Source: Geosiphon pyriformis uo1 (taxonomy: Eukaryota; Fungi; Glomeromycota). Taken from it: a DNA stretch of 64,000 bases. Of this stretch, positions 5,946 to 55,700 are shown piece by piece. The stretch's first letter is position 1. Each line of letters starts with the position of its first letter. The stretch is from NCBI GenBank assembly GCA_016748015.1, contig JAAOMT010000430.1, forward strand, positions 90,232 through 154,231. The letters are read 5' to 3'. The position numbers and the translations under genes are program-made. The notes below the pieces were generated by a model. The model worked only from the letters and a program-made list of their open reading frames with translations, ran no database searches and was not told the origin of the DNA.

Positions 5946-7795
5946 AGTCAAGAAGTGGATTCCGCAACAAGTTATTGAGTTTCTTGAGAAAAAAAAGCTG
6001 ATCTAAGCCTTATAAAAGAAGGTCTCGATATAATCGAGACTAACAGGATTGCCGGTCAAGACTTCCTGTTGTTAACCAAAGAAGAACTTATGCGATACGG
6101 CTTAAAAGGAGGACCAGCAACGAGAATTGCTCTTTTGGTTGAAAAACTTAAAGGCGAAGAGCAAGGTAATTAGTGAGCGAATAATGCAACCATTTGTTGA
6201 ACACGTCATGCACTTTTTTTTGTATACGTTGACTAACTTGTGCTTTTGCTCCTATTGTTTCTTCATCGCTACCGAACAAGCAAAAAAATGCATTGATGGT
6301 AAGTTAGAAAGTATATTAAGAGACATATATTTTTGAATTTGCATGTCTAATTAGCTTTTTTCCAACACAGATTCTAACTTGTACTTTCAGACTAAAGAAA
6401 TGCTCAATACAAAACCACCTTATATTATAGGAAAGTCGGACTTATTTACTTGGCTACAGCGGCCACCTATGAAACCGATCCAAGTTTACCCATCGCTTTA
6501 CGAACAATTCTTTATGGGAAGACTCCCTTCGGATTATTTGAATAAAAATTTTTGTGAGCTCAGAAAATCCTTCCCTAGAAGTGTGGAACAAATTTATCCT
6601 ACACATTGCTCTTCCACCGTTTGTCGGCACCACCGATAATTCATTCATTGCATTTTGGGATGCGCTTATTGTTAAGCCATTTATTATCGGATAACGGGTG
6701 GGTAAATATAGCCGAAACGCGTCTTTACATACTTCCACCAGAAAATTACGGCCTGACCTTTCCTATTCTGTATCGGATGCTTGTCTCGTGAGAGGAGAGG
6801 AAGAGGGTCTTTATACTGAGGGTAATCCAGCGAAGAAACTAACTGAAAAGTTAATATGGACGTGACAATGTCCTTACATTTTTGGATATTATGCACGCGC
6901 CACCACAGTGACATATTCCTATTTGTATTTGGAAGGAGAACAGGTTGTGCGAAAAGATTCGTTCACTTGTGAACTGAATGAGCTAGAGGGACGCATAAAG
7001 GCTTTTATTATCGGAGTTAACATGGGTCGATTATTACCTCTACTTTGCCAAACCGTTCCACAATATTTTCAGCGAGAATTTGTCATCCTTCCCCAGTCAA
7101 ATGGCAAGGTAGTTGGATTAATGCAAAATGTCGTCGTGAAACGTTACCGCTCGACACAGTCTGTTGTATATATCTGAGCTATTTACAATGACATGTCCAA
7201 CCACAAAGTTCCTTTCATTTATCAGCTAGAGCACGTCAACGAGGATGAAACTGGAGCGCCGTTCGTAATTCTTTCACCAAAGGGTATGGTATATAAACCA
7301 GAATCAAAGAAACAACTAATCAAAGCGTTATGTTGTGTTTTAACCGCTCTTAAGGTATCCATTGCTTTCATTTGATTTATCTCAGAAACGTAGGTATTTT
7401 ATGACTAAAACATTCATTCCTAGGCTCTTCACAAAATAAAGATCATGCATCGTGATATCCGTTGGGAGAATGTGTTAAAATTGATCGATCGAGATAAGTG
7501 GCTCATAATCGACTTTGATGACGCGTTTTATACCACTTCAGCTGCTTCCGGCGCACACTTCGCTGAAGAGAACCATGCACCCGAGATTTTCCAAGACGGT
7601 TATAACGAGAGCGTCGACATATGGTCCGTCGAATACCTGATTCTGACGGCCTCTGTGCAACTTCAAGAATTTGATGAATTGAAAGTCTATGCAAGAAAGT
7701 TGTCGGCAAGAAATAAACTTGATAGACCAACAGCGGAAGAGGCTCTACAGTGGCTTTGGAGCGAATATTATGATATTCTTAGGGAGGAGTTTTAG
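5587..7795 (+). pseudogene. Crinkler (CRN)-type effector: SAM-like domain + PD-(D/E)xK REase-like domain + kinase domain; spliced and disrupted
   Basis: Reconstructed frames: SAM-like NRIAGQDFLLLTKEELMRYGLKGGPATRI (~6040-6130); REase-like SFIAFWDALI...RNASLHTSTRKLRPDL...CLVRGEE...KLIW..PYIFGYY (~6640-6900); kinase MHRDIRWENV...IIDFDD...HAPEI...VDIWS...RPTAEEAL (7445-7795). GT-AG introns at ~5771-5836, ~6166-6280, ~6299-6370, ~7355-7423. Frameshifts at ~5990 and ~6600; in-frame stops at ~6692, ~6863, ~7175. Confidence 0.85.
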
Positions 7796-8599
7796 AAGAG
7801 GAAGCATAAATTCAAAATGGGTCTAATAATCTTTCGGATGAGCATTAATCATTTACCGAGATTATATTGTAATGATTGCAAAGTAATCTTGAATATTGTC
7901 AAAGAGATGAGACGAATTCTTTTCTAAAGAGTATATTAATTGATTCACATCAAATATTCTGATCGTTGGATAATGTGTTATTGGATTTACATCAGCTTAA
8001 CATTCTTAATATATTAGTTCTAGTGATTGGTTTGTTTTAGCTAAAATAAAATTCTTAAGATTTATTATTGAAAATTTGCTTAAAACCATATTATTACAAT
8101 AACCCAATATTTAATTTTTTAGAGAGGAATTATAAAGTTAATTAAGAAAAAAATTATTTTTTATTTTATATTTTTTCCAAATGGCAAAAGTAATTTCCAA
8201 GAAAGTATGAAAATATAAAAATTTACATAATAATTTGAAAATTGATTAAATGCTATATTGAAAGTTTGCTGGAATATTTTAAAACTTTACAAAAATATTC
8301 AAAATTTATAGTATCTTAACACCTGAAATATATATATTTTTGCTTGAAAATATTAAAAACAAATATTTTTTTGAAATTTATTATATTGCATTTAATTAAT
8401 AAAAATATTTCTTAATAAAATTTGATATTTAAACCACAAAAAAGAGTCAAGTAACCAAAAAAAATTTTAGTGTTTAACAACTTTTTTATTTAAAAACTGA
8501 CAGCTGTAAACAGCTTTAATAATAATATATATAATAGCAAAATTAAAAAAGAACTAATACAAGCTTAAAAAGAGATATTTTGATGCAAAAAAACAAGAA

Positions 8600-36438: not shown

Positions 36439-37019
36439 TAAAAAAATAATATGGATTAAAGAAATATATATCAATCAATTATCTTTGTGTTTTAATCCCG
36501 ATTGAATCTGACTGCTGCAAAGAAAATTAGTTTCAATAAATTAAATATCCTACTCAGTATCTATTTAAATAAAATTAATGAGATTTAATGAATTATAAAA
36601 ATATGACAAAAACATATTCGTTCTTCCTTTCTATTCAATCTTAACATTTTAATATTTAACATGACAATACTTTAATATGAAAGTGGCAACTAATTCAATT
36701 AGATTATAAATACAATCTAATTTGTTATGTTTTAAAGAAATTCCTTAAATCTCAATATTTTGGAGCCATATTAGAACAAAATATTGATTATCTTATGTCT
36801 TATTTCAAAATAATTTGGTTTGTTGTTTTGAATAGAATAAATCAACCCTCAACTATCATATGATAAAGTTCACATTCATTCTTATTTATTTGATTAATGA
36901 TGAGAATATTCATAAAATCACCCATTCTCATTCCCAATCCCTATGAGTGAAAACATAATTTTATAAGTTCAATAATTATTTGAAAAATAAAATTTATAGA
37001 TTGAAGTTTACAGAAGCAA

Positions 37020-37554
37020 TGTGATGATGTCGTACTTATTGGACACCATCTCAAGGAACCCAAATATATATACCTCAAACCAGCACTTCAGATAATCGCA
37101 AATAGTCCTGAACCATATCGTGAAGATATTACATTTCAGGCTATAAAGCCAGATAAAATTCCAAAGCTGGATTCATTTTCACTGGAAAGAGGTACAGTGA
37201 CTATATTCGAGGATATATGTACCGAACCAAAGAAAATTCAAGAAAAAATTATACCTTATTTTACTGAGGGGCGTCATTCTAATGTTTCTTCGATATATGT
37301 ATCACAGAGTTACTTTGACTGTCCAAAGCTAATACAAAAAAATTTAAAATATGTTGTACTTTTCAATGGAAGTTGCTCTTCAGATGAGTAGAATACTTCG
37401 TTTATATGTTAATAACTGGCGTAGTATCTATAAACTTGTTAATAAGTATCTATGCGAACAGAAATTTATTGTTTTCGATATAAGTGTACCTCCTGAGCAT
37501 TCACACAGAGTACGAATTGGTTGGGATATGCCAATTAGTCAACTTGATGAATAG
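37020..37554 (+). pseudogene. A32-like / FtsK-HerA-family viral packaging ATPase (Polinton/NCLDV type), 5'-truncated and frameshifted
   Basis: Open frame [16 protein letters not shown]...[10 protein letters not shown] (Walker B)...[37 protein letters not shown] (GRH arginine finger, Q sensor, PKxxxxN), frameshift at ~37388, then SRILRLY...FIVFDIS..RVRIGWD. Walker A is missing; the upstream DNA is unrelated AT-rich sequence. Confidence 0.8.
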
Positions 37555-37818
37555 AGCGAGATTTCAGATATTCAAGGAATTTTTCCGCCTCTTAAATTCA
37601 CGTGATTAAATTTTGCGGGACATAATGTCTCGGAAAAATGCAAAGAAAAAATAAACATGATTGATATATTTATTGCTGAGCAATGACTCGAAGAGTCTAC
37701 ACGAAAATCTTTATTTAACCCATGATGGTTATTGATATATTTACATCTGAAAATCGATACAACTCATGATTAAAATTTATTATATAACTACGAGATAATA
37801 ATTCCAGACTAATTGTAG

Positions 37819-38212
37819 ACAACGTAGAATTGGGGGGAATAATACACCCGCACCATCTACTGGGGAAGTTGAATATGAATTAGGTCAAACATTGCCAGGT
37901 AACCGAAGAAGCCGAAGAACTTCCATTGATAGTCGAAGAAGTCGAAGAAGTCGAAGAAGTCGTAGACGGTCAGCATCTCCATCTCCACCCCGTGATGCAA
38001 TAAACACTAATACAAACAATCCTGGTGTGGAAAATCCTGAACAAAATATTGGTCATTCTGGCTCTATCGAAACATCATCTCTTTAATCACCACCACCTTA
38101 TGAGGCACAAAATAATTTTTCAGAAATGAATCAGAGCCATGTTGTTTTTAACCGCGAAGTAGCTGTCTCTGGTATCGATAAACGAAGAGGTTGGATAAAT
38201 ATTTTTTATTAA
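37819..38212 (+). pseudogene. Exon encoding an Arg/Ser-rich low-complexity protein with a PPPY motif; one premature stop
   Basis: Branch point and acceptor ctaattgtag (ends 37818); RRSRRTSIDSRRSRRSRRSRRRSASPSPPR encoded by 9-bp agtcgaaga repeats; TAA at 38084 (likely CAA>TAA), then SPPPYEAQ... to TAA 38212. Confidence 0.5.
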
Positions 38213-38240
38213 ATAAAAATAGTACAGTTATCGCCGTATA

Positions 38241-38302
38241 CATGTGAATCTACCCACTATTTTTTTGTGGGTAGCATCACGTGATTTTGGCGAACATGTT
38301 CG
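38241..38302. promoter_or_regulatory. Adjacent inverted repeat (hairpin) and perfect 14-bp palindrome
   Basis: gtgaatctacccac-tattttttt-gtgggtagcatcac hairpin, then gcgaacatgttcgc; CACGTG box overlaps the hairpin's right arm. Confidence 0.6.
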
Positions 38303-38653
38303 CTGAATTTTTGCCAAGAAAAAATAAAAATTTGTGGGATATTATATCTCGGGAATACCGATATGTCTAGTAATAAAATCGATTGCGTAATACAGATGTT
38401 CGATCAACACATCACATGTTATATCACAGAAGAAAATCGAAGGTCATGGAATTTTTCATGCTGATTGTTACTATAAATTCTAAATCTGATTGACTAACTC
38501 GTGGCATGTGCATTTTCTTTGTGAAAAGTTTTTCGCATTCCCTAAATCTACCTAAATAAAGACAAAAATGGGTGGGCGAAAGCGGTTTAAAAGGACGTTG
38601 TGGTTATTCGTCGTTTTTACTTGCGATATTGACTCAAACTATTCACGGTTAAA

Positions 38654-40412
38654 ATGTCAAACTTAGTTTCAAAAATCGAAGCTCTTTTTTTGGAAGGTTC
38701 TCTTGACGCTATATGTTCCGCTACTGTCATTTATCTAACAAGAAAAGGAACAGCTTTACAACCATTACTTCTCGTTAAAGACTTAGCGGAGCGTGCAGTG
38801 AATTCCTCATTAACAAAAATAACTGATTTCGATCGAAGAATGAGAGTGTTGGAAGTTTTATCACAGGTTGGTACATCCCATATTTGATATTTTCTATAAT
38901 TCTCATTGTGATGATTTCACAGCAAATGGTACAGAGTTTGTTTTATATACTGCTGGTTAGGGACGCCGGCCCGGAAGAGCGATGTTGTCAGGAAAATTTC
39001 CTCACGATGTCGAGGGTTTCTGCTACCCCCTAACTATGTGCAGTTCTATAGTCGAAAACAAAAATACTCTATTGTTCGTCAAAATTGATAGAATCTGAAT
39101 GTTCACGTGCAAACATATGGGGTTTTTTAATTTTGTGGCCACAAATCTAACTTATCGCATTTGCTGTAGATGAAAGTTGGATATAAAAGTGTCGTGGGGT
39201 TGGACGCGGTAAAAGGACTGAAGACGGAGCAGGAGCCTAACCTCGACCGTACAAGAGAAGAGATAGAACGGAATACAAGAACCTTAAAATCAAAGCTAGG
39301 CTCACCGATGACCGATGCAGACATATCCCTCTACAATGCCCTCAAAACCAATCTACGAAGCATCAATCTTTCCGAACTTTCGTGGCGTGATCCAGAGGCA
39401 AATATGATTATTTCCGACGATTCAACATTAGTAAAAAATTTAGGGACGAGACAGAAGCAACTTTTTTTAGAGCCCTGTGAGAATATGAAATGCGTTCTCC
39501 CCACTTCGGTTATTTCAAGATGCGATGAATTCGTAAATAATCTTAATAATATTGAAGTACCGGATGTGCCCATGAACATTGTACATAACAAAGAATGGAA
39601 AGAGAAGGATGTTAAATTGTTAGAACGAACAAATCGTATATTAAGCGTTTTGTAGGTATTTTTTATCTTTGTATTGATTTTAAGAACTTTTTAACTATTC
39701 TTAATGCAGGGAGGGGGTATGGAACAATCCAGCATTTGCAACTAGCGAAATGCGTAGTTCTCAAAGTGAAGGAACTTATATCACAGACATCGTTGTACCT
39801 TTGCTTCGGGCCGGTTTGGATGATCTCCCAAATGGTAGTATTTGTATGAGCACTGCGGAACGTCAGAGTATAGCAAGTAAGGTCCGAAAAAGTCTTGGGG
39901 TGAATGAAGAAAAGAGTTCACACTCTCCCAGAGTGCCAATAGGGAAAAAACCCGATGTTATGGTGATGGAAAAATGTGGAGGTAAGATTTTTGAACTTGG
40001 TTATGTGGAATCTTCACGGGTCGTTTGCACTAATTCAAAAAAAGAGGATGATTCTATAAAATTGTGGAGGGAAACCCTAGATGGAATAAGTCTCGTCGGT
40101 ATTGCTTGTAGACCAACAAGTAATCAATTTGGTATTGTTGGAATTCAAGTGGCTGGTGAGGATTTATGTCTTAACGTTTTAGTGAGAGATGCAAATGGGA
40201 TACCAAGATATTTCCATCTTGTCCAAGCTCAAATACCTTTTACAAAAAGTACTTCATGGCGTGTGAAGCCTCTTGTTCATCTATTACTGACTTTGAGAAA
40301 TATTACAATTGTAAACAAAAGCTTACTAATGCAGGCATTAGAGCAAGCTAATACACGTCCACCCCGAAATGCTAATCCGAGTCCCACAGTTTCTTCACCA
40401 TTATACGATTAA
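38654..40412 (+). CDS. Spliced, apparently intact ~465-aa protein with a C-terminal PD-(D/E)xK restriction-endonuclease-like domain
   Basis: Exons 38654-38866, 39170-39651 and 39710-40412 join in frame via GT-AG introns (ctaac branch point at ~39147); extra small exons inside intron 1 are possible. C-terminal motifs SEGTY..ERQSIASK..GKKPDVMV..ELGYVESSR..DDSIKLWRE..GIQVAG. Confidence 0.75.
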
Positions 40413-40925
40413 TCTTTGTAATATTTTGATCCTTTGTATTTTTATCTATATCAATAAAATTGTCATGATGGCGATTTATCTTATATATGAGTACCTGCGT
40501 GAAAATCTGACAAAAATCAAAAAATTAGATAATACAAACATAGTCACGCGTTATTTATCGGGCATATGATAGATTATTAATTATATGCTTGTAGTACATC
40601 CCGAAATAGATTCCACCCCGAAATAGATCATATACGATTATCCCAGATATAGAACGACGTATTATCGGTGCTTCATTTTGATTGGGTAATCGCCATATAT
40701 ATCTCCCTACCGATTATCAATGATTACTTACCTCTCACGCTTCTTTTTTTTCTGCGAAAGTAATACTATTCTTCTTGAGTAGGACATCGGCTCTAGGAAT
40801 TATTCCTAACGGCTCGTCGAATTGCGTTGCTTTTGTACGTTTCTGCCTATCAGCGGAGCTAGTGTCTAGACACTTATTTAATACATTAAGACCATTTTTT
40901 CTCTGCATTCGCTTTATTATAACCA

Positions 40926-43548
40926 TGAACTCAACCAACAAACGAAAAGAAGCTGTCACGTCGGAAGAAACACCACCCACGAAGAAGTTATCACGACAGG
41001 CCCGAGCACGTAGAAATAAAAAACAGAGGCGTGAACAAGAACAGATTGTGATACATCAAGAACCTGGGATTGATGCAAACTCCCTCACAAGTTCCACGGA
41101 AATGAATTCGATAATAAATACCACCGATATAATTTTTGATCCGACTCGAGAAATATTACCGTTAATTTTATAAAATGTCTTTGCGCTAGATACATTTGTG
41201 TTGATAAGGCTGTCTTAGTTATTTGCGTGGGTTTGTGGAACAGAACGGAGCCGTGACCGTCCTGCGCTTTGGCTAAGACAATTTGTTTGTTCCTCAAAAT
41301 GTAATCTTGTCGCTGAGTCATTTAGAGATAGGTTTTTTTTGCTCACCTGTTGCTAGTGGCAAAACAAAAACACTAAGAGAAATTCTCGATTCCTTAGCCA
41401 AAAATAGAGCAGATTTGCCTTGTTTAACTGGATTTCATATCGTAAAACTCTTAGCAATGAGACTAAAGCTAAAGTTGAAATATTGCAAAATTCAGGACTT
41501 CGTGTATGCCATTATCAGGAAAATGAGGGTAATTTAGCTATACGCGACTGGGATGTTATTATTGTCCAAGTTGAAAGTACCCATCGTCTTAATTTCTATG
41601 GAAGGCGTTCTTACGTAGTTATCTTAGACGAAAATAATGCTATTATGCGTCAAATGTCTAGTGGAGTTCATGCACGTGAATCTGAAAATGCTATGCGGGA
41701 TTTATTAAAATCAGCTGTTCATGTTATTTCTATGGATGCATTTGCAAACGAATCGACTTTAAACTTTTTGAGACAATATCGAGGTGGAGATATAAGAATT
41801 TTTGATAACGAATATAAGCCACGTGAAGGTGAGACTGTTAAAATTCTTTATGATCCAGATAAAGGATCAGAAGCTATACATAGGGGTCTTAAGATGCTTC
41901 AGGAAGGTAAACGAGTTGCTTTTTCAATGACCTCATGCAAAAAAGCACGAGCTTTGGCAAACCAAGCTTCCAAATCACAAAAACCAGACGGCTCGCACGT
42001 TTTATCACGAGTTTATTTTGGCCAAATGGATGGAAAGCAACGGCAGGATGACTTTGCCGATATTAATGCTACTTGGAGTGGTCTTGATTGTGTGGTTTAT
42101 ACAAGTACTGTAGAAGCTGGCATCTCTTTTGAAATTTCCAATCATTTTGATGCAGTTATAGGAATAAGTAATATTAATACAGGAGTACATGCTGAAGCTT
42201 TTGCACAAATGTTTTATCGAGTTCGCGATTGCCCATATCGTATTATTTCTCTCTATAATAGTAAAAAAACTGGCATTTTCAAAGAACCGAATCGTGATCT
42301 CATTCGTGCTGAACTTTCTGCCCTGAGACCTGGCGACTTGCCAACTGCTATAAAAGGACATCGTGAATGGAATAAAATTAACGACTGTTATACACTTCAT
42401 TCATCTCCAGCCGTAGAGACTTATATTGAGGTCGAATATGAAAGACGCTTATCGGCCAAATATTTTCCTGAGATTCTTTGTAGTCTTATTGCTAGTACTG
42501 GAGCAACTCTTGAATTAATTTTGGCAGAAGATACTGAAAAAGTTAACAGAAATGAAATTTCTCATACTATTAAGAATATTGAGAAAAATATTAAAAGCTC
42601 GGATGCAGAATCAATAGCAAATGCTCCAGATATTAGTCCCAATAAAGCTGAAATTCTTAAGCAAAATCCTATATGCTCTTTTGCTGATAACATGACTTTA
42701 CAACGTCATTATTTATGGAGAACATATGCTTCAGGTGATATTGGTGGCAAGGATGATATTCGAAACTGGGGTATGAATAATGATAATTGGATTAAGCTTT
42801 GTAATATAGATTTCGTAAAAAAATTCAATAATCCTGAACCTTTACAACATTTTAGAAAGCTGGCATATTTCAGAAGACAAGGTTCCAATGCGACAAAAGC
42901 TATAGAAAATCTAAAAATCAAAGAAAAAATGCAATGGGAAGATTCACATGAATCTATGGATCCATCTTCAGTCGATTTGCATAAATTTTATTCAGCAAAA
43001 CAATGGGAAGCGGTACATAATCTTGTCCAATCAATAGGTTTAGAGATATAGATGATATGAATATTCTTTCTGGTGATGATGTGGCTAAGACTTTCGAGCA
43101 ATTACGGGAAAAAATCGTTAAAATTCGAGAAAATGCATTGTTACTCCTTGGTTTTAAGACCAGAGCTAAAGGATTGCTCGATCTCAATGCTACAATAAAA
43201 TTTATTAATGCGGTAATGGGTAGTTGGTACGGTTATACTATCAAGAGTGGTGCAACTTGTGTAGGTTCTAAAGAACATCAAGTATGGAAAAAAACGTATT
43301 GGATTGATCGCAACCCATATTGTGGAGCTGGCTTTAATAATCAAGAAGTAATAGCTAGGAAGTTAGAATATTGTCCTATAGCTCCAGTTCTTCCATCATA
43401 TAAGTCAAAGGTAATTGACGAAATTCAGGATCTTTTCGATTCAATACCCATTACTACTGATATCGCCATTTCAAAATTCAGTAATGAGGTTTGTGAAAAG
43501 AGTTCTTGCAATAACATAGTTGAAAAATCCGTAACAGATTTGCCATAA
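40926..43548 (+). pseudogene. Herpesvirus UL9-like replication origin-binding protein / SF2 helicase (Herpes_ori_bp type), frameshifted
   Basis: Motif I SPVASGKT (~41343), Ia ISYRKTLS, IVQVESTHRL, II VILDE, III ISMDAF, V YTSTVEAGISF, VI QMFYRVR. Single-base frameshifts at ~41423 and ~43042. Basic NLS-like N-terminus (KRK..KKLSRQARARRNKK) from ATG 40926, separated by an interruption at ~41160-41330. Confidence 0.85.
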
Positions 43549-43730
43549 TTGCCCATTTTCATGTTTGATTGCAAGTATATAAGCGTCGCTTGTAGAGTGG
43601 TTGTAGTGCGTCGACTTTCGAACTTAGGCTAACACCCTTTAAAAACGATTTTCTGCGCAGACAACCGTTTGCTTTACTTGAGCACTCTTATCTTATACTT
43701 GCCAACAAAAACCCTAACCTTTTATCAAAT

Positions 43731-46303
43731 ATGTCTCAATCTACTTCTCAACCTACTATTTCTTCTAATGACATGGACATTGATGTCCCCCTAATGAACA
43801 TTAGGGAATCCGTCGCTGTCCAAAAGCTCACTGACCAGCTTGTGCTCAAGATCGGTTCTTCCGGTCTTGATAATATGTCGTTCCCTCAAATTCCATAGCA
43901 AAAAAATTATGTTCTTTTTCTATTTCATAAGATAGATGATCTGAAACGTAAAATTGTTGCTAATTCAAACCGTGACCCAAAATCTTTTCTACCCACTCCT
44001 CTTTATGATCCTTCTCAATTTCTTTCCGATGACTTACTCATGATTGATAATACGCTTGGTGAAGTTTGTGTGGCTTTAAAGCATTCTCGTGAAAATCTGC
44101 TATTGGCAAAAATTGCCGAGTATGATGCTTTCATCGATAAGTCTCCCTCAAAAGTTCATTCGGATGTCGCCAATTTAATCAGTAAAGTTCATACTGATGA
44201 CTTGGTTTCCGATGAAGCTAAGAGTGGTTTACTGGGAATTCTTGATAAAGAAATTAAGGAGTTTGAAACGTTCATTAAAACTCGTCCAGCTTTAAAGGAC
44301 TTGGTCATTGGTTCCGCTGTGGTTAGTTCCACTCCACACAAGCCTGTTTTGAAAAAATATTTTTCTAATAAGGTTGTTTCTGTAGGTTCTGGTATCGAAA
44401 CCTCCCCCAAAACGCAAGGTTCAGCCATCTCCGGCCAAGAAGAACCTCCCAAACAAAAAAGTGAAAAATGCAAAACAAGGCGATCAAAAGGGAAAAAAAA
44501 GGTCTCAAAAACAACGGTTAAACAACCGCTCGAAGCCGAAAAATCAACGAAGGTATTGGTTCACAATATTTCTTCTGTGATTATTTCCTCTTTCGTTATG
44601 GATTTCTTGAAGTTAGGTTCGAACTTTCAACTTACTTCGAAACCCTCTCTTGTTAAGACCTATCAAACGTGGTCAGGCGTCAGGAAACAAATTCTCGAAG
44701 CCTATAGTAAAATCCCTGAAAGGAAAAGAGAAAGCCTCTTAATTTTCAATCAGCGTTTACTCTTTGCATCCGACTACATTTTAAATAATTTCAATGTCCT
44801 TAAAGATCGTAGAAATAGTATTTTTAATATCTCTGGATGTGTTAATAATGTTTTATTATTTTTAATAGATCACGACTTCATTGTCGTTCCATTAGATAAA
44901 AACATGGGTCTCACTATTTGTGATTATTCTCATTATAACACTGAAATGCTTAAGCTACTTTCTGACACTTCGGTTTTTAAGCTTTGTGATGCGCCTGACG
45001 TTTCGCACTGCTCTAAATTGCTCTCGGATCATATATCTGATTTTTATATGAGCACTGACTTAAGAGAACGTAAAAATACTCATGAATACTTGCGAAAAAT
45101 ATTTTTTCCTTTACGTAATTCTGAATTACGTTTCCCTGAAATTTATGGATTATGGAAATTACACAAAAACCCTTGTGTTCTTCGTCCCATTACTCCTAAT
45201 CATTCTTGGATTATGTCCGCTGCTTCGCGTTGGTTAGCCAAACGTTGGCAACCCTACATTAAAAAATGTCCGACAGTCCTCGATAATTCTATGAGTTTTA
45301 TTTCGAATCATTATCATGGCTATGTTACTGTTGCTACATTTGACATCAAGAATATGTATACCAATATTGAAATTCGTACGCTTTATCAGCGCATTTGGGC
45401 TTGGCTGAAATTTCTTTCACCTGATCGCTCAAATTTTGAGAATCTTTGGTTGACCTTTGAAGTTAAACTTATGAGGCTTATTCTTGAGAATAGCTTTGTT
45501 CTTTATGAAGATTCGTTCTATCACCAGCACAAAAGACTGGCGATGGGTACTTCAGCTGCTCCTGTTATCACGAATTTATTCTGTGCTTCTATTAAACACA
45601 AAATTGTCGCGACTATGGGTAATACTTTTGGGTCCACTATTGTTCGTCGTTATTTGGATGATATTATCGTTATTTATGATCCTCATAAATTCGATATTAA
45701 TGCCTGGGTACGGTATTACCACTCCCTTGCTGTTCCTTCCACGTTTATTTTGGAACGCACCGATAATGACGACTATAATGCCGTATTTTTGGATTTGAAT
45801 ATTTCGGTTTTCTGGTCTGATAATCTTACCAAATTTTCAGTCCAATCTTATGACAAAACCATGTAATCCTCATATATATACTGATCCTCGGACTTTTTAT
45901 CCCAGGAAATATGTTATGAACTGGATTCAGGGCGAAAATATTCGTCATATTCGAAATAATTCGGATTTTTCCAGTTACTGGGTTCATATTAAGAAATTTA
46001 AAGCTTGACTGCTGGCTAGGGGCTATCCCCTGTTTGTGGTTGACTTTCAACTTAACAAAATACTTGCCTTGGCTTCTTGGTTCTCATGGAAAAAGAGATT
46101 TTTCTAGTACCATTGTTAAGATTCCTAATCTACCGGAAAGGCCTCTCATATGTAAAGTCATTCATGATGTCATTTTCCCTTCATTTTCGGGTCATGCCAA
46201 CTCCCTGGTACCTATAGTTACCCGTGGTAGTAGTGTTTTCAACGTTGTTAATAGAGCCAGAAGGACTTTAATCGCCCAAAAACTGGCTGAACCTACTTTT
46301 TAG
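43731..46303 (+). pseudogene. Penelope-like reverse transcriptase ORF (~856 aa reconstructed)
   Basis: ATG 43731 is in frame with ORF 44040 (TAG at 43896). Motifs IVVPLDKNMG, PEIYGLWKLHKNPCVLRPI, ATFDIKNMYTNI, LAMGTSAAPVITNLF, RYLDD, FLDLNI; thumb YDKPCNPHIYT...GENIRHIRNNS...LLARGYP after a +1 A at ~45858; TGA at 46006; +1 A at ~46058; ends ...VTRGSSVFNVVNRARR..PTF. Confidence 0.9.
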
Positions 46304-46445
46304 TGTTCGCCGGTGTTGGATCCCGATTGGTTTGCATGATCTGGCTTGACTTGGTGACGGCCGGCTAAATTATTTTATCCTTGGTCCAGCCATGTGATTG
46401 GCCATTGTCACGGGCTCTAGCACATGATTAGTTTTGTTCTATGAT

Positions 46446-46500
46446 GCTAACCCAATCCTTTACACCTGATCTTAACCCTAACCTTGACCCTAACCCTAAT
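46446..46500 (+). repeat. Degenerate telomeric repeats (CCCTAA)n, about 9 hexamers
   Basis: ctaacccaatcctttacacctgatcttaaccctaaccttgaccctaaccctaat. Confidence 0.8.
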
Positions 46501-46599
46501 ACTTATTTATAATTTTAAATTGGCTAAACAAAAAGTTAATCATATCCAAATTGGTAATTTGATTATAAATAAAATTTTTAATATTAATGTAAAGCTTAT

Positions 46600-47700
46600 T
46601 TAATTAAGTAAAAAATTAACTTAAAAAATTGAAGAATTTTTTGTTAAAAATTTAAAAACATATTAGTTTTTACAATATTAAAAAAATAACAGCAGTCTAT
46701 AGTATTAATAATATTATTATTATTAAAAATAAAAACAATCATAGAAACAAAATTTTTATAACTATTACTATTGTTAAAAATTAGAATATATTGTCAGAAA
46801 TTAGAACATATTATTAGAAACTACTAAAAAAAATATTTAATTAATATTAACAAAATTAATATTAAGTATAATTAAAATATATATAATTAATGAGATATTA
46901 ATATTTATTTTCTTAGTATTAACAACTCTAATACTTATTTTGATTATTACAAAATTATTATTAATATTTTTAAATAATAGTATAATCTTAATTTTAGTAT
47001 TAAACTTTTCAATTTATTAATTCAAAATCCTAAGTTATTAATTATAATTAAGAATAAAAAAACAACAAAAAAAATCAATTTTAATTTATATTTATATTAT
47101 TATAGAGTATAAGTTACAGTAATTTACTACTTTAAGCACTATTAAATAGATATTTTAACCAAATTGCTTATCTTGGTTTTTACAAAATTCAGAATTTTAA
47201 TATTATACTTTTAAAAAAAAAGCCATAATTAAGTTCACCAATTTTTTTTTTCCTAACAATAATCAAATTACTTTTAATATAATTTCTTTAACTATAATTA
47301 CTGAAGATAAAATACTTGCTATTATTTTTTTATTTAATAAAAAAAATTTAAATATTTTTAATTTTTTTAGTAAAGCTGTTTTAATTAAAATAAACTAATA
47401 ATAATAATATATATTAATGCCAAAACAAAATAAATAAATATTAAATTAATACTTATTAGTAAATTAACTGACAAAATAATTATAAAACAACTTATAAATT
47501 AATTAAGTTACTAAGTTAATTAATATTATTAGTTGAAATTTAAGATATTAATTAATATAAAATTATTCTTATAATTTTTACTATTAATTAGTATATATTA
47601 TTATTTCAAATTATCATTGATTATTTTATTAAATTATTCAAATTATTATTTAATTAATAATTTAATTTATATAAAACACAAATATAATTAAATTATAATG
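46600..47700 (+). mobile_element. Extremely eroded Ty3/Gypsy gag-protease relic
   Basis: NIISLTIITEDKILAIIF (~47276) and the following protease-like frame parallel the better-preserved NIPLVTIMKNELLTAIFPF...TIKLII region at ~59520-59700. Confidence 0.55.
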
Positions 47701-48149
47701 ATCAAATTATATAATACACTAAACTATATAATATTAAAAATTTCCCAAAATATTTAGTAATTTAACAAAATATTTAACAGTTTACCAAAATAATTTATAA
47801 TTTGCAGAAATAACTTGTAATTTAATAAAATATATCTTTAGTTTACCAAAATATTAAGAAAAAAAAATGCTAGATTATAGAATAGTATTATAATAAGTTG
47901 TATAAAAGAAAAGCATTTTTTAAAACAATATATCTTAGTTAAAATTAATTTTTATTAAATATCTTTTTTATAAATTAATTTTAATAAAAACTTATCTTAA
48001 AAACATAAAAATTCTTAAATATTTTTTTATTAAGATTTAATGAACAAAATCCAACTACTGTTTAGAAATTAGAAACAAACTAAAAATTTTAGTGTTAAAC
48101 ATAGTTTATATGCTTTTTACATATAATTAGCTACTTAAGCCAGTTTAAA

Positions 48150-50250
48150 CTATACTATATTAATATAACAAAAGAAAACGTATCTAAAGACAACATCTTT
48201 TGAATAATATTAAACAAGATAACACTACAAACAACCAATCCAACTAATTATTTGACTGTTTTTAAGGAGTTAGTTTTAATGCTAATAGACTTATACTTTC
48301 AAAAAAAAATTAAGTTAGAAAATATATTATTATTAATATTAACTGAATGTTTTAAATTATTAAACATATTAATATTTTCTATGCAGTACTTTTTTTTAAA
48401 AAAAACTACTTTTCTTCTCAACTTATTAATAATCTTGTTAAAAAAATTCAAATAAATTATAAGTTCATTAATCTTGAAGCTAAAAACACTGTTTAATGTA
48501 AAATTATACTTAATAAAGTATTTAAATACAATAATTAATGTATTAATAGGCTTAATAATAAACTCAACCAAAATTAACAACTTAATTAAATTGAATTTCA
48601 AAAATATTAGCTAAAAAAAAATCAAAAAATTACTAATAACCATAAAAAAAAAATAAAAACCACTAAAAAAAAAAACTTAAAAGAATCTAAAAAAGCAAAA
48701 GCTTTAACATAAGAAATATTATTCACAAAATATGATTTAAATATTTTATAGTTCACAATCAGATAATCTATTTTTTGACATTTAAAACAATATTAATAAC
48801 TAGAAGTTTTTATCAAATATGTCACTTTCTTAGTACATTAGTTTTGACAACTGCAAAGTTTAAGTCAATTTAAAATTTAAATATAATCAGAACAAATCAA
48901 AAATAATGACCAGAATTTAAAAAACAAAAAATAAAATACATTTGGCTATCAACTTAGAGAATCATATTATTAATCTCAAAAACAATGCAATCAAAAAAAA
49001 AATTAACCAACTTGGTTTTAAATCTATCTTAAAACAAAATTGTCTTCTTTTAATTTACAAAAAAAAAAATCCAAACATTATTTTTGCTCACTAAAACTAA
49101 CTAGTAATTGAAAACAAATGCAGCAGCACAAAATTTTTTAAAATAAACAATTATGTATTGTCAAATATCAACAGACTTTAGCACAACATAGAAAACAATA
49201 CCAAAAACACGAAAAGCTGTCTTAATATTAGCAGTAGACATACTTAATAACACATTACACAATACAATAGCAGCAAAAAAAGAACCAAATTAAGAAACTA
49301 CCAAAAACTTGGCAATTTTAAGAGTGATCAAACAAATAAAGCTTGTAAGTTTAATTAAAAACATAGTATTCAGAAAACTTTAAAAAGCAAATACTGTATA
49401 GAAAAGCTTTATATTGTTTTTAAAAACAAATTTCACATTCAAAAAACCATGTATAGAATGAAAAACAGCCTTAATATGAACCAATTTGATATTAAAAATA
49501 GTATTAGATATCAAAATAAAGGTTATTTACTCAGTAAATCTTTGATAACTAATAATGATTTCTTAAGTATTACTAGTAATAATACCAAAAACCAAAAAAG
49601 ATAATAATGATTCAGTTTTTATTTAATTAACTCAGTTCTCAAAAACAAGTGACTTAACAGAAAACTATTGTTTTGTTTTTAAAATTGGCAAAAATCTATT
49701 AGAGACTTTATATTTGACAACATAATTAGTAATTAATTTTGGTCTATCTTAAATGATAGACTAATTGATACAACAGAGATTTTATCTAAAATTTTATTAG
49801 AAATTACAAAGAAGTTTGTGTAACAATAATAGAAGCAAGTAATTGTCTCACTTTTTTGAATCTTTAATTTTTTTAATTATTTTATTAAAAGAGATAATAT
49901 TAGCAATACTAAATATAAAAACTATAAAAAAAAAGATTTGCTTGTTAACTAGTCTATTATTAAAAAATTTTGGGTTCTTAAAGAAAATAAAAACAACACT
50001 AAAACTAATTCAAATATGTTTTTTTAAAGAAATTTTAATTGGTAAAGAACTAATTAAAGATGAAAAAAATATTCAGCAGTCACTAAAGGCAGCTTTTTAT
50101 TAATATCTTTAAAAAATATGACCAAAACATTATGTTTAGCTGTATTAATAAAAAAAAATTCTTTTATGTTAAAATTTTATTAGTTATTATAAAAAAAGTA
50201 ACATTTGTAGCTTTTTTACTTTTTGTTCTGATCATGATTATAAAATTAAA
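48150..50250 (-). mobile_element. Degenerate LINE ORF1 relic
   Basis: Minus-strand peptides TLKIAKFLVVS..AAIVLCNVLLSMSTANIKTAFRVFGIV..LKSVDI*QYIIVYF..RFKTKLVN..CIVFEINNMI resemble the RRM-type LINE ORF1 of these fungi (from recall). Confidence 0.6.
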
Positions 50251-50699
50251 AAAACAAAGAGTTTTTGATTTTTTCTTAAATATTTTTGTTTCAATTTTAT
50301 ATTAATATTTTAAAATTAATTAATTACTAATTTTAGAAATTATTAATAACTTTTAAGTCTGAATTTAAAATGACTTTTTTGATATATATATATATTTTTT
50401 TTTTGTTTATTTTTTTTTATATTATTAAGTAGTTATAGTTAAAATTTTTTATAAAAGAGTTAATTTTTACAATAAAATAACTATATAAATTTTAAAGAAT
50501 TTACAGATAAAATTTTTTTGTAAAAGAGTTAATTTTTACTGCAAAGTAATTATACAAATAATTAATACAAAATTATTTTCTTATAAGCTTAACAGCATAA
50601 ATAGTTTAAAATATAAATATTTTGAAAAAAAAATTAACTTATTGGAAGTTTATTAAGTTCTATTAACAATATTTAAAAAAAAATAGAAAAATTTCTAAT

Positions 50700-52620
50700 A
50701 ATATTTGATGTTTTTTTAAAAATAATACAGCAATAATTAAATTAATAATTATTTTTTTGGAAACAACAATATCACAAAAATTAAAAAAAAATCTTTTTGA
50801 AAACTTAATTTATTATTTAAACAAAGATCTAAAAGTTATTAATACTAATACTTATACTATTTATTTTAAAAAACTTAATTACAATATTATCAAGTTTTGT
50901 AAAAAAAGATATTTTGTTGATTTACAATTTGTTTTTAAACTTAAATTTGAATTTAAAACTAACAACAAAGACAAAAAAAACATTTAACCAGTTTATACAA
51001 CTTTTATTATATTAAAAACAAATTTTTTAATATTTATAAATACTTAAATAAAAAATCAATTTTAAATTACCATTTTTAATTACATTTTTCTTAGCTTTGT
51101 TTGCTTAAGTACAAATATTTAATTCATCTTTTAACTAATTTTTAAGACCAGAAAACTTTATTGAAAATTTAATCTAACAGTCAAAATTAGTTTTAAACTA
51201 GTACTAATTTTTTTAATTATTTAATAGAAAACCAAAGTAAATATTTAGAAACATTAACTTATAAAAAAGACATTTCTGAATCTATTGAAAAAAAAAATAA
51301 AACAAAAAAAAAATTATAGACAACAAAAAAAATAAAAAAATAACTACTTATATTGCAAAAATTTTTAAATTTTCTAAAAAAAACATTAAAACCAGTTCTT
51401 AAGAGTGGTTTAACCAAGTTATTAAAGCAAAAAACACAAATAAATAAAATATAATAAGAATATTAAGAGCAATTTTCTATTTTTTTAAAAATTTTTTGGC
51501 AAATAATTCAAAAATTTGGCTGTTTCTTTTACAGAATATTCAATTTTTAAAACTGCTTTTTTTAAACAGTTTATAAACAACAATACTTTAATTATTCTTC
51601 AAAACCACTTTTAAAACATTAAATAAAAATTATTAAAATCTATTATAACTTATATTAAAAAGTTTAACAAATTTTTTAAAAGAATTTATTAACTTAAAAC
51701 AAATACTTACTACTCTAATTTTTAAAATTTGGATTAATCTATCACTAATTTAAAAGATAAATTAATCAGAAAAGTTTATTTATATGCTCTAACAAATTTA
51801 AATACTACTATTTAACATATTAAAAACTATAAAATAATTATGGAAAAAACAAATTGCATTAAATTTGTTAATCTTGTAATTAAAAAAACCAGTTTAATAG
51901 CTAAAAAAAAAATCAATTAACTTGTTAAGAAAGTTAAAATATACTTTGTTAACCAATAACAAAAATACTAATTATTACAATAATAAAACAAAAAAAATTT
52001 ATTGTTTAGTAATTTGTCTTAACAATCAAACAATTATTATTATGAAATTTTCAAACACTAAAAATACAATTGCCAAAAAATACAAAAAAATTAATAAAAA
52101 CAAAATAATAAACATTATTTTTTTCAATAACAACAATTTTATAATTTATTATTATTTATTTACTATTTTTTAAAATCTCAGTCTACTTATTATCAGTTTA
52201 TTTTACAATAACTACAATAATATTATCAATTATTTTTAATTTAAAATTATTAATCACTAGCAAAAAAATTAGTTCAACTTAACCAATTTACTTTTCAAAA
52301 TTGTTTTCAAATTAATAATAACAGATTTAATTTTAATAATCAATTGGTATTTTGTAATAATAATTAACAGCTATTTAAATATTTTTACATTCAATAAGCT
52401 ATTTTACAATACCAAAAAATCAAAATTTTTATCATATTGTACTTTTAAAAAGTAGAACTATAGTATAACTACAAAATTTTTTTTTAACTACACAATAATT
52501 TTACTAACAAAAATAGCCAAAAATGCCAATATTTTAGATATATTTTTATTTGAATTTAAAGCAAATAAATTATTATTCTTATTTAGCAATATAACAACTT
52601 CTTAAAAAAAGTTATTACAA
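50700..52620 (+). mobile_element. Eroded Ty3/Gypsy gag relic
   Basis: YIAKIFKFSKKNIKTSS*EWFNQVIKA..RILRAIFYFLK (~51350), FKTAFFKQFINNNTLIILQNHF, and DIFLFEFKAN (~52540), homologous to the gag at 58260. Confidence 0.65.
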
Positions 52621-52759: not shown

Positions 52760-55700
52760 ATTGTTTTATTTGTCTTGTTGTTTTGGTCTGACAAATCTTT
52801 TTAATATACAAGGTCTGCAGTAATATTTGGTGATGATTGGCCATTTTTCATTGTTTCTGATATATATGCTCATAGAAAATAACTTTTTCTCACAGTTAAC
52901 ACAAATTAATTTTGGGATTTGATATTATTGATTTCCTTGATTTGGAGTAAGATAGCCTACAGGTGCCAATTGTAGTTTTTCTTCTGCTTTTCTCTTGCTT
53001 TTTTCTTCTCAAGTTGGTAATAAAGGTAACTCTGCTCAGTAATTGTCAGCCCAAAAAACTTAATAGGTCTCTATTATTGGTAGTAGTATTGAGTCTTCAA
53101 ATTTAATCAACAGTTTTTCTGGGCTTTGAGCTTTGAAGTATCTACACATAGCCAGAACTCATACATGCTGTCTGTTAAAGATAATCTGTAATTCTTGCAT
53201 ATTCTAGTTGATGGTAACATTAACTTTGATTAACCAATTATTTTCTACAAGAGCTTAATATTGAGTGGCCTCCATAATAAGCACTTTGATGGGGATTTGA
53301 ATTTCATCAATTTCAAAGAGAAAATTGTCAATTTTTTCTATCAGGATTTTAGTATTTCCATCTGTAATTATGATTTGGGCAGTAGCTGCACAGTCTACTT
53401 GGTGATCTAGTTGATCTATGAGTTGCTTTATGATTATACTACTTGCTAATCTACTATCAAGAATTAATTTGATGTCCATGTTTTTAACTTTAGTGTTAAT
53501 ATACAAAACAGTTATTAGTTTATCTTGATTAATAGTGGCTCTACTGAAAAAACTATTGTTATTTAGATGGTCAATGTCAAAGAAAAAGATAGTGACAAGA
53601 GTAGTGTCTTCAGTAATAGTAATGAGTAGAATAGTATTATTGGTTTAATTTTGACTCAAAGAGTTGAGTATTTTTCTTATATCCTTCCTTTTTAAAGATG
53701 TAGAGCTAAAAAAACCTGGCTTTTAGTGAGACCAAGATATGAAACTTGATTTGGGTATTTGGTTGGTACTAGTTGAGATGAAGCATTATTCCAATTGAGA
53801 GGTTACAATAATTCACTGTTAATTTGCATTTAATTGTTGCTGAAGTTCTTTTATCCTTGGTTATAGTCAATTGTACGAGGTCTAAATAGATTATAGATAG
53901 AGTTTTGATACTGTGGTGCTACTTGAATTATTGACTGCAATGACTAATAGTAGTTCTGAGGCAGTTGTTAAGTATATGTAATTGGTTGTATGTATTAGGA
54001 CAGTAAATACTAGAACATAGGGTATTGGAGTTCTATTGCTTGGAGATATCTTAAGTGTTGATATTGAGTTCCTCAATTTTGGTCTGCTAATTTCTGTCGG
54101 CAATCCTAAACAATATGTTCAGGTTTTTGGTAATAATAACAATTGCAAGAATCAGATCTCCAAGGTTGTTGTTGTTGCTAACATTCCTGTTGTTGGTAAT
54201 ATTTACTGCTGTTATTGTTTCTTTGTTGGGGTAACTGATAAGTTTTCGTGGTACTGGTTAAGAATCCCTCAATTTTTTGAGTTAATTTTTCACTTAATTG
54301 AGTTATTTTTGCATCAATGTTTATGGTTTTATTGATAGCTAAATTAACAGCTTGGATATGATTGGTTTCTTGTTTTGCTAACTTAAAATTACAAGCAAGG
54401 GTAACAGCATCTGGTAAATTTGTTGGATGTTGGAGTCTCATAGATTTTAGGAGGCTGTTCCTTAATTTCTTGACAAATTAATTAAAAACTTGCATCTTAG
54501 TGTAATAGTCTTTTTCAATTGCCAATATTTGACAAAGAACTTGGTTGAATTGTCCAAGATAAATAGTCACTGCTTTGTGGTATTTTTGTTTTATTATACT
54601 AAATTGATTCTGTAATCTGATAAGAGTATTAGGATTGCAAAAGTATTTTAGAAAGACAAGTTTAAAAGTAGTGAAGTTGGTTGGTTTTTCTGTTAGGCTT
54701 TGATATCATAAGTTTGTAATTTCTGTTAAAAAAAAAGGTAGAGCTTGAATGGTCTTAGTATTATCCCAGTTGTTAGTAATAATATCTTAGTAAGCCATAA
54801 TCTGGTGGGTAAGTGGAGTTTTACTAGTTAATGCTAAGGGATTTAGTGTTTGCATGCTAGGAGATTCTTCTGGTGCTAAGGCTGGTTGTTTTTTTTGTTC
54901 TTGAAATTGCTCAATTGTTTGATGAATGTTTTCTCTATTAATGTGGTTGTTAATTCTGTTAGAGTTTGTGCTCTCAGTGGTTTCCAAGTTGATGTATCTT
55001 CTCCTGTTTTACTAGCTGTAAGGATTAGATTTCTAAACAATGATCCGTATTTTCCTAAGAATCTGGTCTAATTGTTGTAATCTTATAGGTGTTAATTTCC
55101 AGAAGTTTGTGGTGTTCTTGCCTAAATTTTCATGGTTGGATTAAATATAATTCTACTTTCTGGTATCTAATGATATAGTGAAGTTGTTGAAGAAAGGAAT
55201 CTTGGTATCTTGTTGATTGTGGAGTGAACTTGTTTTTGTGCAGCTGCTGTGCTATCAGATTTGGACTTGCATTTTTCAGGATTAGGCCTTGCTGATTGTT
55301 TTACTTAAAAGTAATGTTTTTCTGTATAATACTCAATGTCTTTATTGAGTATACAAAGAGTTTTGGCTATGGCTCAAGTAGTAGTATTCATTGAGTTGGC
55401 TAATAATTTTTGATGAATTTGTTCTTTAAGTTTTCCAATGTCTGTTATTTGGCCTAGAAAGCAGTTAATTTTTGCATGCAAATAGTCACAAAATTGGTTT
55501 TTTGTGATAATAGTTTCTGTGAGTATTTTTAAGTCTTTTTGAAAGTATTAAAATAATGCTTTTCTATACAGAGTGTGATCTTTTTCTACTGTTTCAATAG
55601 TTGTCACTTTTGTAAATTTTCGAAGTGCTCTGTTTTTGTAGATTTTATAATCTTACAAAAAGCACTAAATGTTACAAATAAACTTAGTGAAATAGAAAAA

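Follow-up and report, generated by a model that had tools for sequence, protein, structure and literature searches.

This report concerns a window of 64,000 nucleotides (nt) from the genome of Geosiphon pyriformis (contig JAAOMT010000430.1, positions 90,232–154,231). Contigs of the host genome are labelled C###, C635 being the one that carries the window, contigs of related loci are labelled L###, and proteins P####. At 43557–46499 on the forward strand, the window holds what is probably a dead copy of a Penelope-like element (PLE) of the endonuclease-lacking, telomere-tailed (Coprina/Athena-like) kind with one open reading frame (ORF), carried in a duplicated block. Rotifers, Dikarya fungi, diatoms and a clubmoss are established hosts of elements of this kind. 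To our knowledge, endonuclease-less PLEs are known from few lineages only, and among mobile elements telomerase has no closer relatives.

By homology, the 5′ edge of the element lies at ~43557–43560, and not at 43549, where a preliminary description of the sequence had placed it. From 43557 on, the window is 81% identical to a telomere-adjacent fragment at C771:610463–610813, with which it has a 5′ leader in common (43557–43632, forward strand). The short telomere-like piece AAACCCTAACC stands 12 nt upstream of the ATG in the window copy; it was read directly at 43708–43719 (forward strand), where AAAACCCTAACC amounts to ~1.5 units of the telomere C strand. A ccctaacc just before the ATG had already been remarked upon; it falls at 43709–43719, and it is kept in the C771 fragment and in five relatives (L064, L066, L067, L081, and L083), while in paralogues C346 and C613 the AAAACCCTAACC motif has decayed by C>T. 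The decayed ORF (43731–46303, forward strand; ~857 codons ancestrally) runs from an ATG at 43731 to a TAG stop at 46301–46303, which aligns with the C-terminus of the intact 871-amino-acid homologue P0001. It encodes an N-terminal region with a basic stretch resembling a nuclear localization signal (NLS) at 44451, a DKN motif, reverse transcriptase (RT) motifs and a thumb, and no endonuclease. The PLE-specific DKG/DKN motif reads DKNMG (44895–44909, forward strand); across the family its D, K, and G columns vary little or not at all, and they line up with the DKGSG of P0009, a GIY-YIG-bearing protein. The RT catalytic motif YLDD (motif 5/C) lies at 45651–45662 (forward strand), and a match to Pfam RVT_1 (E 5.6e-7) comes from the longest open piece. 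Aligned to P0001, three frame pieces follow one another in order and end to end, up to residue 868. Because they reach the P0001 C-terminus, there is no room for a GIY-YIG domain, and the protein ends with the thumb. The initial identification of a PLE RT without GIY-YIG therefore stands on the RVT_1 match and the P0001 alignment, but the thumb, then called complete, is present as pieces broken by frameshifts and a stop (aligning to P0001 residues 712–760 and 797–868). Downstream, a 3′ untranslated region (UTR) of 144 nt (46304–46447, forward strand) leads to the telomere-like tail; the ORF list contains no other ORF between the stop and the tail, and the fold of the 3′ UTR is no better than that of shuffled sequences.

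The reading frame of the window copy is interrupted by an in-frame TAG at 43896 and, in the thumb region, by a +1 frameshift (an extra A in the A-run at 45855–45858), an in-frame TGA at 46006 and an 11-nt deletion at ~46057–46066; a further deletion of 9 nt after 45297 is in frame. With two in-frame stops and two frameshifts, the window copy is dead. All of these lesions are private to it: at the corresponding sites the three paralogues read AAG, lack the additional A, read TGG, and retain the deleted bases, and the codon at 43896 is AAA in the C771 fragment. Since only the window copy has the TAG at 43896 and relatives encode one ORF of ~870 amino acids, the ancestral element had a single ORF. 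The private nature of the lesions likewise indicates that the ORF was open at these sites when the block was duplicated.

The affinities of the protein were examined through profile, structure and tree comparisons. Homologues P0009 and P0010 show GIY...YIG motifs, and their DKG aligns with the DKNMG of the window. The family profile matches P0023 from Rotaria (RVT_1 + DUF8422 + GIY-YIG + HTH_animal; E 1.5e-60) and other proteins annotated DUF8422 + RVT_1 + GIY-YIG + HTH_animal. A hidden Markov model (HMM) search returned 62,641 representatives at E ≤ 0.001; among the 150 best, a GIY-YIG-like motif was found in one, and the close relatives lack PF01541. No copy or close relative encodes GIY-YIG, and on this point the first description is supported. 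In a quick IQ-TREE tree, the window RT falls in a clade of 11 rows with support of 99 (SH-aLRT, the Shimodaira–Hasegawa-like approximate likelihood-ratio test), made up of the window RT, five Gigasporaceae-type sequences and five others; the contigs of the four that were looked up among these five others carry tails, and the GIY-YIG sequences are placed outside the clade. The Atlas structure neighbours of P0001 are DUF8422/GIY-YIG/HTH_animal clusters (TM 0.56–0.61 by query), and several Atlas feature neighbours are rotifer clusters; the nearest feature cluster is mostly Basidiomycota, which is a lead only. A single-sequence search of PDB with the RT gave no matches. A telomere-specific element of the long interspersed nuclear element (LINE) type was considered and rejected, as there is no ORF for an apurinic/apyrimidinic (AP) or restriction-enzyme-like (REL) endonuclease and the RT is of the PLE type. 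The element family is common to the window genome, Gigasporaceae and metagenomic relatives.

The tail consists of degenerate CCCTAA units on the sense strand (46448–46499, forward strand; ~52 nt). Tandem Repeats Finder (TRF) reports 46448–46499 with a period of 12 (4.2 copies, 68% matches) and 46473–46499 with a period of 6 (4.5 copies), and the final 24 nt read CCCTAA CCTTGA CCCTAA CCCTAA, i.e., three perfect units and one CCTTGA. The preliminary description had counted ~9 degenerate units ~140 nt past the RT; the tail is indeed there, after the 144-nt UTR, but nine is reached only by counting very degenerate units. Taken by itself, the tail carries weak significance: 0.09 (CCCTAA)2 matches are expected and one is observed, and a match also turns up in 9 of 100 shuffled sequences. 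There is no further (CCCTAA)2 elsewhere in the 64-kb window. Comparison with relatives was more informative. Contigs encoding homologues at 24–35% protein identity were compared, from Dentiscutata erythropus (L066), JGI/ENA metagenomes (L064, L065, L069, L072, L080, and L083) and public sequencing-run assemblies (L079 and L081). In nine related loci, the stop is followed by sense-strand repeats of the CCCTAA type, never by TTAGGG. The distance from stop to tail is 165 nt in L079, 167 nt in L066, 173 nt in L064, 190 nt in L083, 207 nt in L080, 226 nt in L081, 237 nt in L069 and 615 nt in L072; the well-formed part of the window tail begins 172 nt past the stop. The tails of close relatives are ~50 nt long and similarly imperfect. 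A chance origin of the tail is ruled out by this conserved position after the stop in eight related loci, and because the position is conserved the tail is taken to be part of the element’s own transcript rather than a piece of host telomere. Its position is identical in all four paralogous copies. A hairpin with a GAAA tetraloop was seen directly before the 3′ telomere tail in L064 (3180–3205) and L066 (2895–2920), with compensatory changes in its stems between the two (CCCCUC/GAGGGG vs. CCCACCCC/GGAGUGGG); an equivalent is absent before the window tail.

Relatives also carry a ribozyme at the other end of the element. Type I hammerhead ribozymes are a hallmark of PLEs (PMC4209133), and they are found 60–120 nt before the ATG in relatives from Dentiscutata, Cetraspora and soil metagenomes (L064 295–361, L065 79–145, L066 6–48, and L067 3702–3770). 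In Rfam, where the gathering score is 34, the L066 hammerhead reaches 52 bits; those of L064, L065, and L067 have E ~1e-7. In the hammerhead-bearing relatives, the predicted cleavage site is followed within ~20 nt by TAACCCTAACCC, so that the processed RNA would start with the telomere-like motif. Conserved AAACCCTAAC just past the cleavage site would, speculatively, give the completed cDNA a telomere-like G-strand at its end and so seed re-capping. In the window, ~43585–43632 is probably a relic of the 3′ half of the hammerhead that relatives carry at the same place: in the alignment, the C771 fragment retains CGAAAAACGATCTTAG, to be compared with CGAAATCGATCTTAG in the Dentiscutata and Cetraspora hammerheads. 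This putative relic no longer has the CUGANGA core, its fold is no better than those of shuffles, and Rfam finds no hammerhead at the C771 end (E ≤ 5).

The 128-Mb assembly contains five loci related to the RT. Four are full-length copies (on C635, i.e., the window, and on C613, C346, and C332); the fifth, at C654:789323–790568 (L005), is an older, AT-decayed and internally deleted RT relic with no tail and 60% protein identity. The C771 fragment is a sixth piece. The four full-length copies lie within four versions, ~90% identical to one another, of a block of at least 10.5 kb (window 41335–51838) that comprises helicase ORFs, the PLE and ~5 kb of AT-rich repeats, and over the PLE their pairwise identity is 90–95%. 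The junctions between helicase and element and between tail and downstream repeat are identical in all four blocks. Because homology extends past the element and the junctions are identical, the four copies are segmental duplicates of one insertion. A comparison of 3′ junctions among copies, which had been proposed at the outset, accordingly returned one junction four times and offers no independent insertions. Source-sample contigs cover the whole element stretch, differing mostly by C>T and G>A that derive from paralogues, and the left (helicase–element) junction is bridged by contigs from two independent studies.

The copies differ in how far they have decayed. The window copy is the least decayed and retains the G/C state, and of the private changes in the other three copies 202/215 are C>T or G>A. 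In the alignment of 43540–46520, the counts are 99/104 for C346, 39/42 for C613 and 64/69 for C332, an excess that resembles the signature of repeat-induced point mutation (RIP) or of methyl-cytosine deamination in an early-diverging fungus. Outside the block, C613:31156–34561, C346:1–3130 and C332:21112–24409 have ~3.3 kb in common at 94% identity; this is missing from the window, where 139 nt of other sequence (41196–41335) stand in its place.

Immediately upstream of the element is a pair of UL9-like helicase ORFs (41420–43548; Herpes_ori_bp match, E 3.4e-14), whose stop codon is 9–12 nt from the PLE 5′ edge. The window has a GC content of 35–40% at 37000–46500, an island made up of a virus-like gene module and the PLE between flanks of 12–22% GC, and the right edge of the island is the PLE tail. 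The RT could be read as one gene of a larger composite, Terminon-like or virus-like, that includes the helicase and its neighbours: helicase and PLE are co-oriented and nearly contiguous, they are adjacent in all four blocks, and they occupy one GC island (37000–46500) within very AT-rich flanks. This reading is nonetheless highly improbable. Relatives are stand-alone units of 3.5–3.8 kb, two of which assemble as tandems, the C771 fragment has different upstream DNA, and a helicase paralogue on C733 has no adjoining PLE. Moreover, the four blocks copy one arrangement, so the adjacency has been seen once. The evidence for tandems comes from L064 (3913 nt) and L069 (3576 nt), whose contig ends overlap by 123 and 55 nt, respectively, and which therefore assemble as tandem or circular units of 3790 and 3521 bp.

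The family as a whole is associated with chromosome ends. The host telomere is TTAGGG-based, as the first description had presumed: C635, C346, and C771 end in such arrays, and 1019 CCCTAA arrays of 30 bases occur in the genome, the examples listed being mostly at contig starts (forward) and contig ends (reverse). The C771 piece consists of the 5′ leader and the first 57 codons; a true telomere is 0.75 kb away on the side of its 5′ end, which is the polarity expected of telomere-primed addition. C771:610463–611575 corresponds to L054 8593–9705 (minus strand), where the fragment is preceded by 762 nt that run into the telomere; these are unique in the assembly, which yields no longer 5′ end of the element elsewhere. 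In L083, ~18 perfect CCCTAA units at 4–127 lie upstream of the element, and in its tail (3991–4112) telomere repeats alternate with a repeated spacer of 20 nt, so that the element is flanked by (CCCTAA)n. Given the C771 fragment, L083 and the tandem relatives, the link of the family to chromosome ends is real, and the suggestion that the family is telomere-associated was borne out. Two side observations concern these ends. Composite telomeres were seen at the C771 end (L054 9700–10000) and the C635 end (L074 1220–1500), with TTAGGG in the outer part and ATAGGG plus a 12-base unit, CCCTATCACTAT on the C strand, in the inner part. In run X3, the C771-type contig has a word depth of 400 against 4–17 for window-copy contigs, which could reflect a high number of copies at unassembled ends or strong transcription.

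The position of the window copy is a different matter. The (TTAGGG)n end of C635 is at 222,124, ~85 kb from the element, which occupies 133,780–136,731 on the same strand; on C346, which also ends in (TTAGGG)n, the element is at 5,310–8,279 (forward strand), 15 kb from the telomere. On both contigs it is the tail, not the 5′ end, that faces the telomere. The 5′-distal polarity is found only in the C771 5′ fragment and is suggested by L083; the window and C346 copies do not have it. This bears on the original proposal that 46500 marks a former chromosome end, or a break extended by telomerase, to which the element was added by telomere-primed reverse transcription and which later distal additions internalised. 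That proposal is now unlikely, and as first worded it is not upheld. Family biology does favour free ends, with the C771 fragment 0.75 kb from a telomere and its 5′ end distal, and with (CCCTAA)n upstream and a tail downstream in L083; homology to another contig, C399, starts at the junction, as would be expected if the right-hand DNA pre-existed. Against it, the ~52-nt tail adjoins the terminus of a dispersed repeat, R1, with no tract of host telomere behind it, and does not exceed in length the tails that relatives encode; the window has no other (CCCTAA)2; and the 5′ edge bears no telomere repeats, with the helicase stop 9–12 nt away. The orientation of the tail on C635 and C346, towards the telomere, would reduce the supposed chromosome body to an acentric piece of 85 or 15 kb, and the four copies count as one event.

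The sequence on the right of the junction belongs to R1, a dispersed AT-rich repeat whose left terminus and body directly abut the tail (46497–47605). A second, diverged copy is inverted (53397–54394, reverse strand; 68–71% identity to the first). A query containing R1 gave ~200 first-look candidates in the genome, and at least 29 other loci begin their match exactly at window 46497; bases 46497–46499 (TAA) are common to tail and R1. That R1 might itself be a telomere-tailed element was considered and dropped, as no other R1 copy is preceded by CCCTAA (within 3 mismatches). C399:47710–60075 is collinear with window 46497–52300 at 84–94% identity, its homology starting exactly at the tail/R1 junction, and it lacks the PLE, the helicase and the left flank of the window. 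It was rejected as a simple empty site because that left flank is also missing there. What the element originally joined was the end of an AT-rich dispersed repeat rather than a telomere tract. With the junction at a repeat terminus and the polarity wrong with respect to present telomeres, the site is best described as a relic in a duplicated, loosely subtelomeric block.

Two further origins of this junction may be weighed. LINE-1 elements can insert independently of their endonuclease at breaks and dysfunctional telomeres, where the cDNA is primed on an existing free 3′ end, is often 5′-truncated and lacks target-site duplications. A comparable insertion of the PLE at an internal double-strand break, with the tail primed on a 3′ end at the R1 terminus and the far end of the cDNA joined beside the helicase, is a tentative possibility. 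It would account for an untruncated tail whose end coincides exactly with the start of at least 29 R1 copies, TAA being common to both; for a 5′ end that is shorter than in the C771 copy and joined to non-telomeric DNA without repeats; for a polarity that, either being allowed, fits the one observed; and for the retention of the right side only in C399. It is weakened by the lack of the helicase on the left in C399, which leaves no simple empty site, by the TAA, which could be a target-site duplication of R1 instead of microhomology, and by the literature examined, in which no description of break capture by endonuclease-less PLEs was found. LINE-1 is an analogy for the break capture only, being a different RT class with no templated telomere tail. 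A more specific version, in which 46497–46500 records PLE priming on a free 3′ end at a transposon-like repeat terminus via the 3-nt TAA microhomology, healing or bridging an internal break whose right-hand DNA is preserved in C399, is slightly more doubtful.

The other origin would make the junction uninformative about the target: R1, or a larger transposon with R1 as its left end, may have inserted later at a TAA, either within the tail or within a telomere tract. This too is possible but tentative. R1 is a high-copy repeat with a sharp terminus at 46497–46500, CCCTAA repeats offer a TAA every 6 nt, and 46500–52300 is a nest of AT-rich repeats (12–22% GC); C399 could in that case be a further copy of a composite transposon starting with R1. 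Yet no telomere-like remnant is found at the far end of R1 (~47605) or elsewhere in the window, and the tail shows no shortening in comparison with those of relatives. Furthermore, C399 matches at 84–94%, like the blocks, against 71–78% for other R1 copies, which suggests paralogy and not transposition. The founding event may have been a terminal addition, the repair of an internal break that the element healed or bridged, or a normal terminal copy into which a transposon later moved.

Returning to the reading of the element as an endonuclease-lacking, telomere-tailed PLE, its history may be sketched as follows. The transcript encodes ~50 nt of C-strand telomere repeats ~170 nt past the stop, in addition to the short 5′ telomere-like motif. 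By comparison with the literature on Athena and Coprina, the RNA tail would pair with a G-rich 3′ overhang or with a free 3′ end offering microhomology, and the RT would extend the paired 3′ end, for which no endonuclease would be needed. One ancestral insertion, with its ORF open at the sites now broken in the window copy, was carried along in the block of at least 10.5 kb as this was duplicated to four places, at least two of them 15 and 85 kb from telomeres; all four copies then decayed, almost wholly by C>T and G>A.

Several points weigh against parts of this account. Rfam finds no hammerhead at 41000–48000 of the window (E ≤ 5). The Coprina/Athena-like label comes from features, and the tree was built without named Athena, Coprina, or TERT references, which leaves the clade name unproven. 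A profile search of PDB matched group II intron RTs (E 2e-5) better than TERT (E ~2), a result that speaks neither for nor against a position sister to TERT. The priming mechanism is taken from the literature on other elements. Finally, the C613 and C332 contigs have no telomere ends, and the term loosely subtelomeric rests on two contigs. Overall, the description of the family is solid, and the claim about a chromosome end is not.

Among known systems, Coprina offers the closest comparison. Coprina elements are endonuclease-lacking PLEs of fungi, diatoms and a clubmoss, e.g., Coprina-1_Alen of Ascochyta lentis (PMC13159263; PMC8557442), and DKN is the form of the motif reported for them (PMC13159263). 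Like Coprina, the window element has a single long ORF with an N-terminal region and basic NLS-like stretch, DKN, RT motifs 1–7 and a thumb; it has no GIY-YIG, ends in short reverse-complement telomere repeats and resides in a fungus. The family has at least one telomere-associated fragment in the expected polarity, and its close relatives have hammerheads. In contrast to Coprina, the window copy is a dead one at an internal site, belongs to a segmental duplication and is inverted with respect to the nearest telomere. The A. lentis copies are separated from the chromosome by a host telomere tract, which the window copy lacks, and Glomeromycotina are not among the Coprina hosts listed (PMC13159263; PMC8557442). 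The likeness to Coprina is one of features.

Athena elements, from bdelloid rotifers, are also endonuclease-lacking, and the giant Terminons derive from them. Athena typically has two ORFs and is rotifer-specific (PMC13159263; PMC8557442). The window family resembles Athena and the Terminons in having no endonuclease, in reverse-complement telomere repeats at the 3′ end together with hammerhead motifs, and in head-to-tail terminal arrays; it differs from Athena in its one ancestral ORF and fungal host. The adjacency of a helicase is superficially like that in Terminons but was seen as a single arrangement only. Canonical, endonuclease-bearing PLEs (Penelope/Poseidon, Neptune, Nematis) have a homologous RT, the DKG/DKN motif and the DUF8422 + RVT_1 + HTH_animal architecture in common with the family; they differ from the window element, in which nothing of the ORF follows the thumb and whose clade includes no GIY-YIG sequences. 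The assignment to the endonuclease-less, telomere-tailed (Athena/Coprina-like) kind made in the preliminary description is thus supported by the single ORF, the DKN, the absence of an endonuclease and the sense-strand CCCTAA tail.

The family runs through arbuscular-mycorrhizal fungi, its named members being from Gigasporaceae, and extends a known kind of element to a new host lineage. That such elements are little described in Glomeromycotina had been suspected, and the literature searched mentions PLEs in arbuscular-mycorrhizal fungi only in passing, as a RepeatModeler class label in the repeat annotation of Gigaspora (PMC13443276). Across these fungi, the family has a layout of hammerhead, short 5′ telomere-like motif, single ORF, and 3′ telomere tail at a fixed distance past the stop, and these features are simple marks by which annotators can recognise such elements. 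A telomere-like tract deep in a contig need not be an old chromosome end; it may belong to an element and have been moved by segmental duplication. At the tail, the sharp breakpoint in paralogy also gives a checkable case in which to ask whether PLEs can patch internal breaks. A minor observation concerns P0007/L071, labelled as part of a Turicibacter metagenome-assembled genome: it is a eukaryotic endonuclease-less PLE, and the bin probably contains a misplaced contig.

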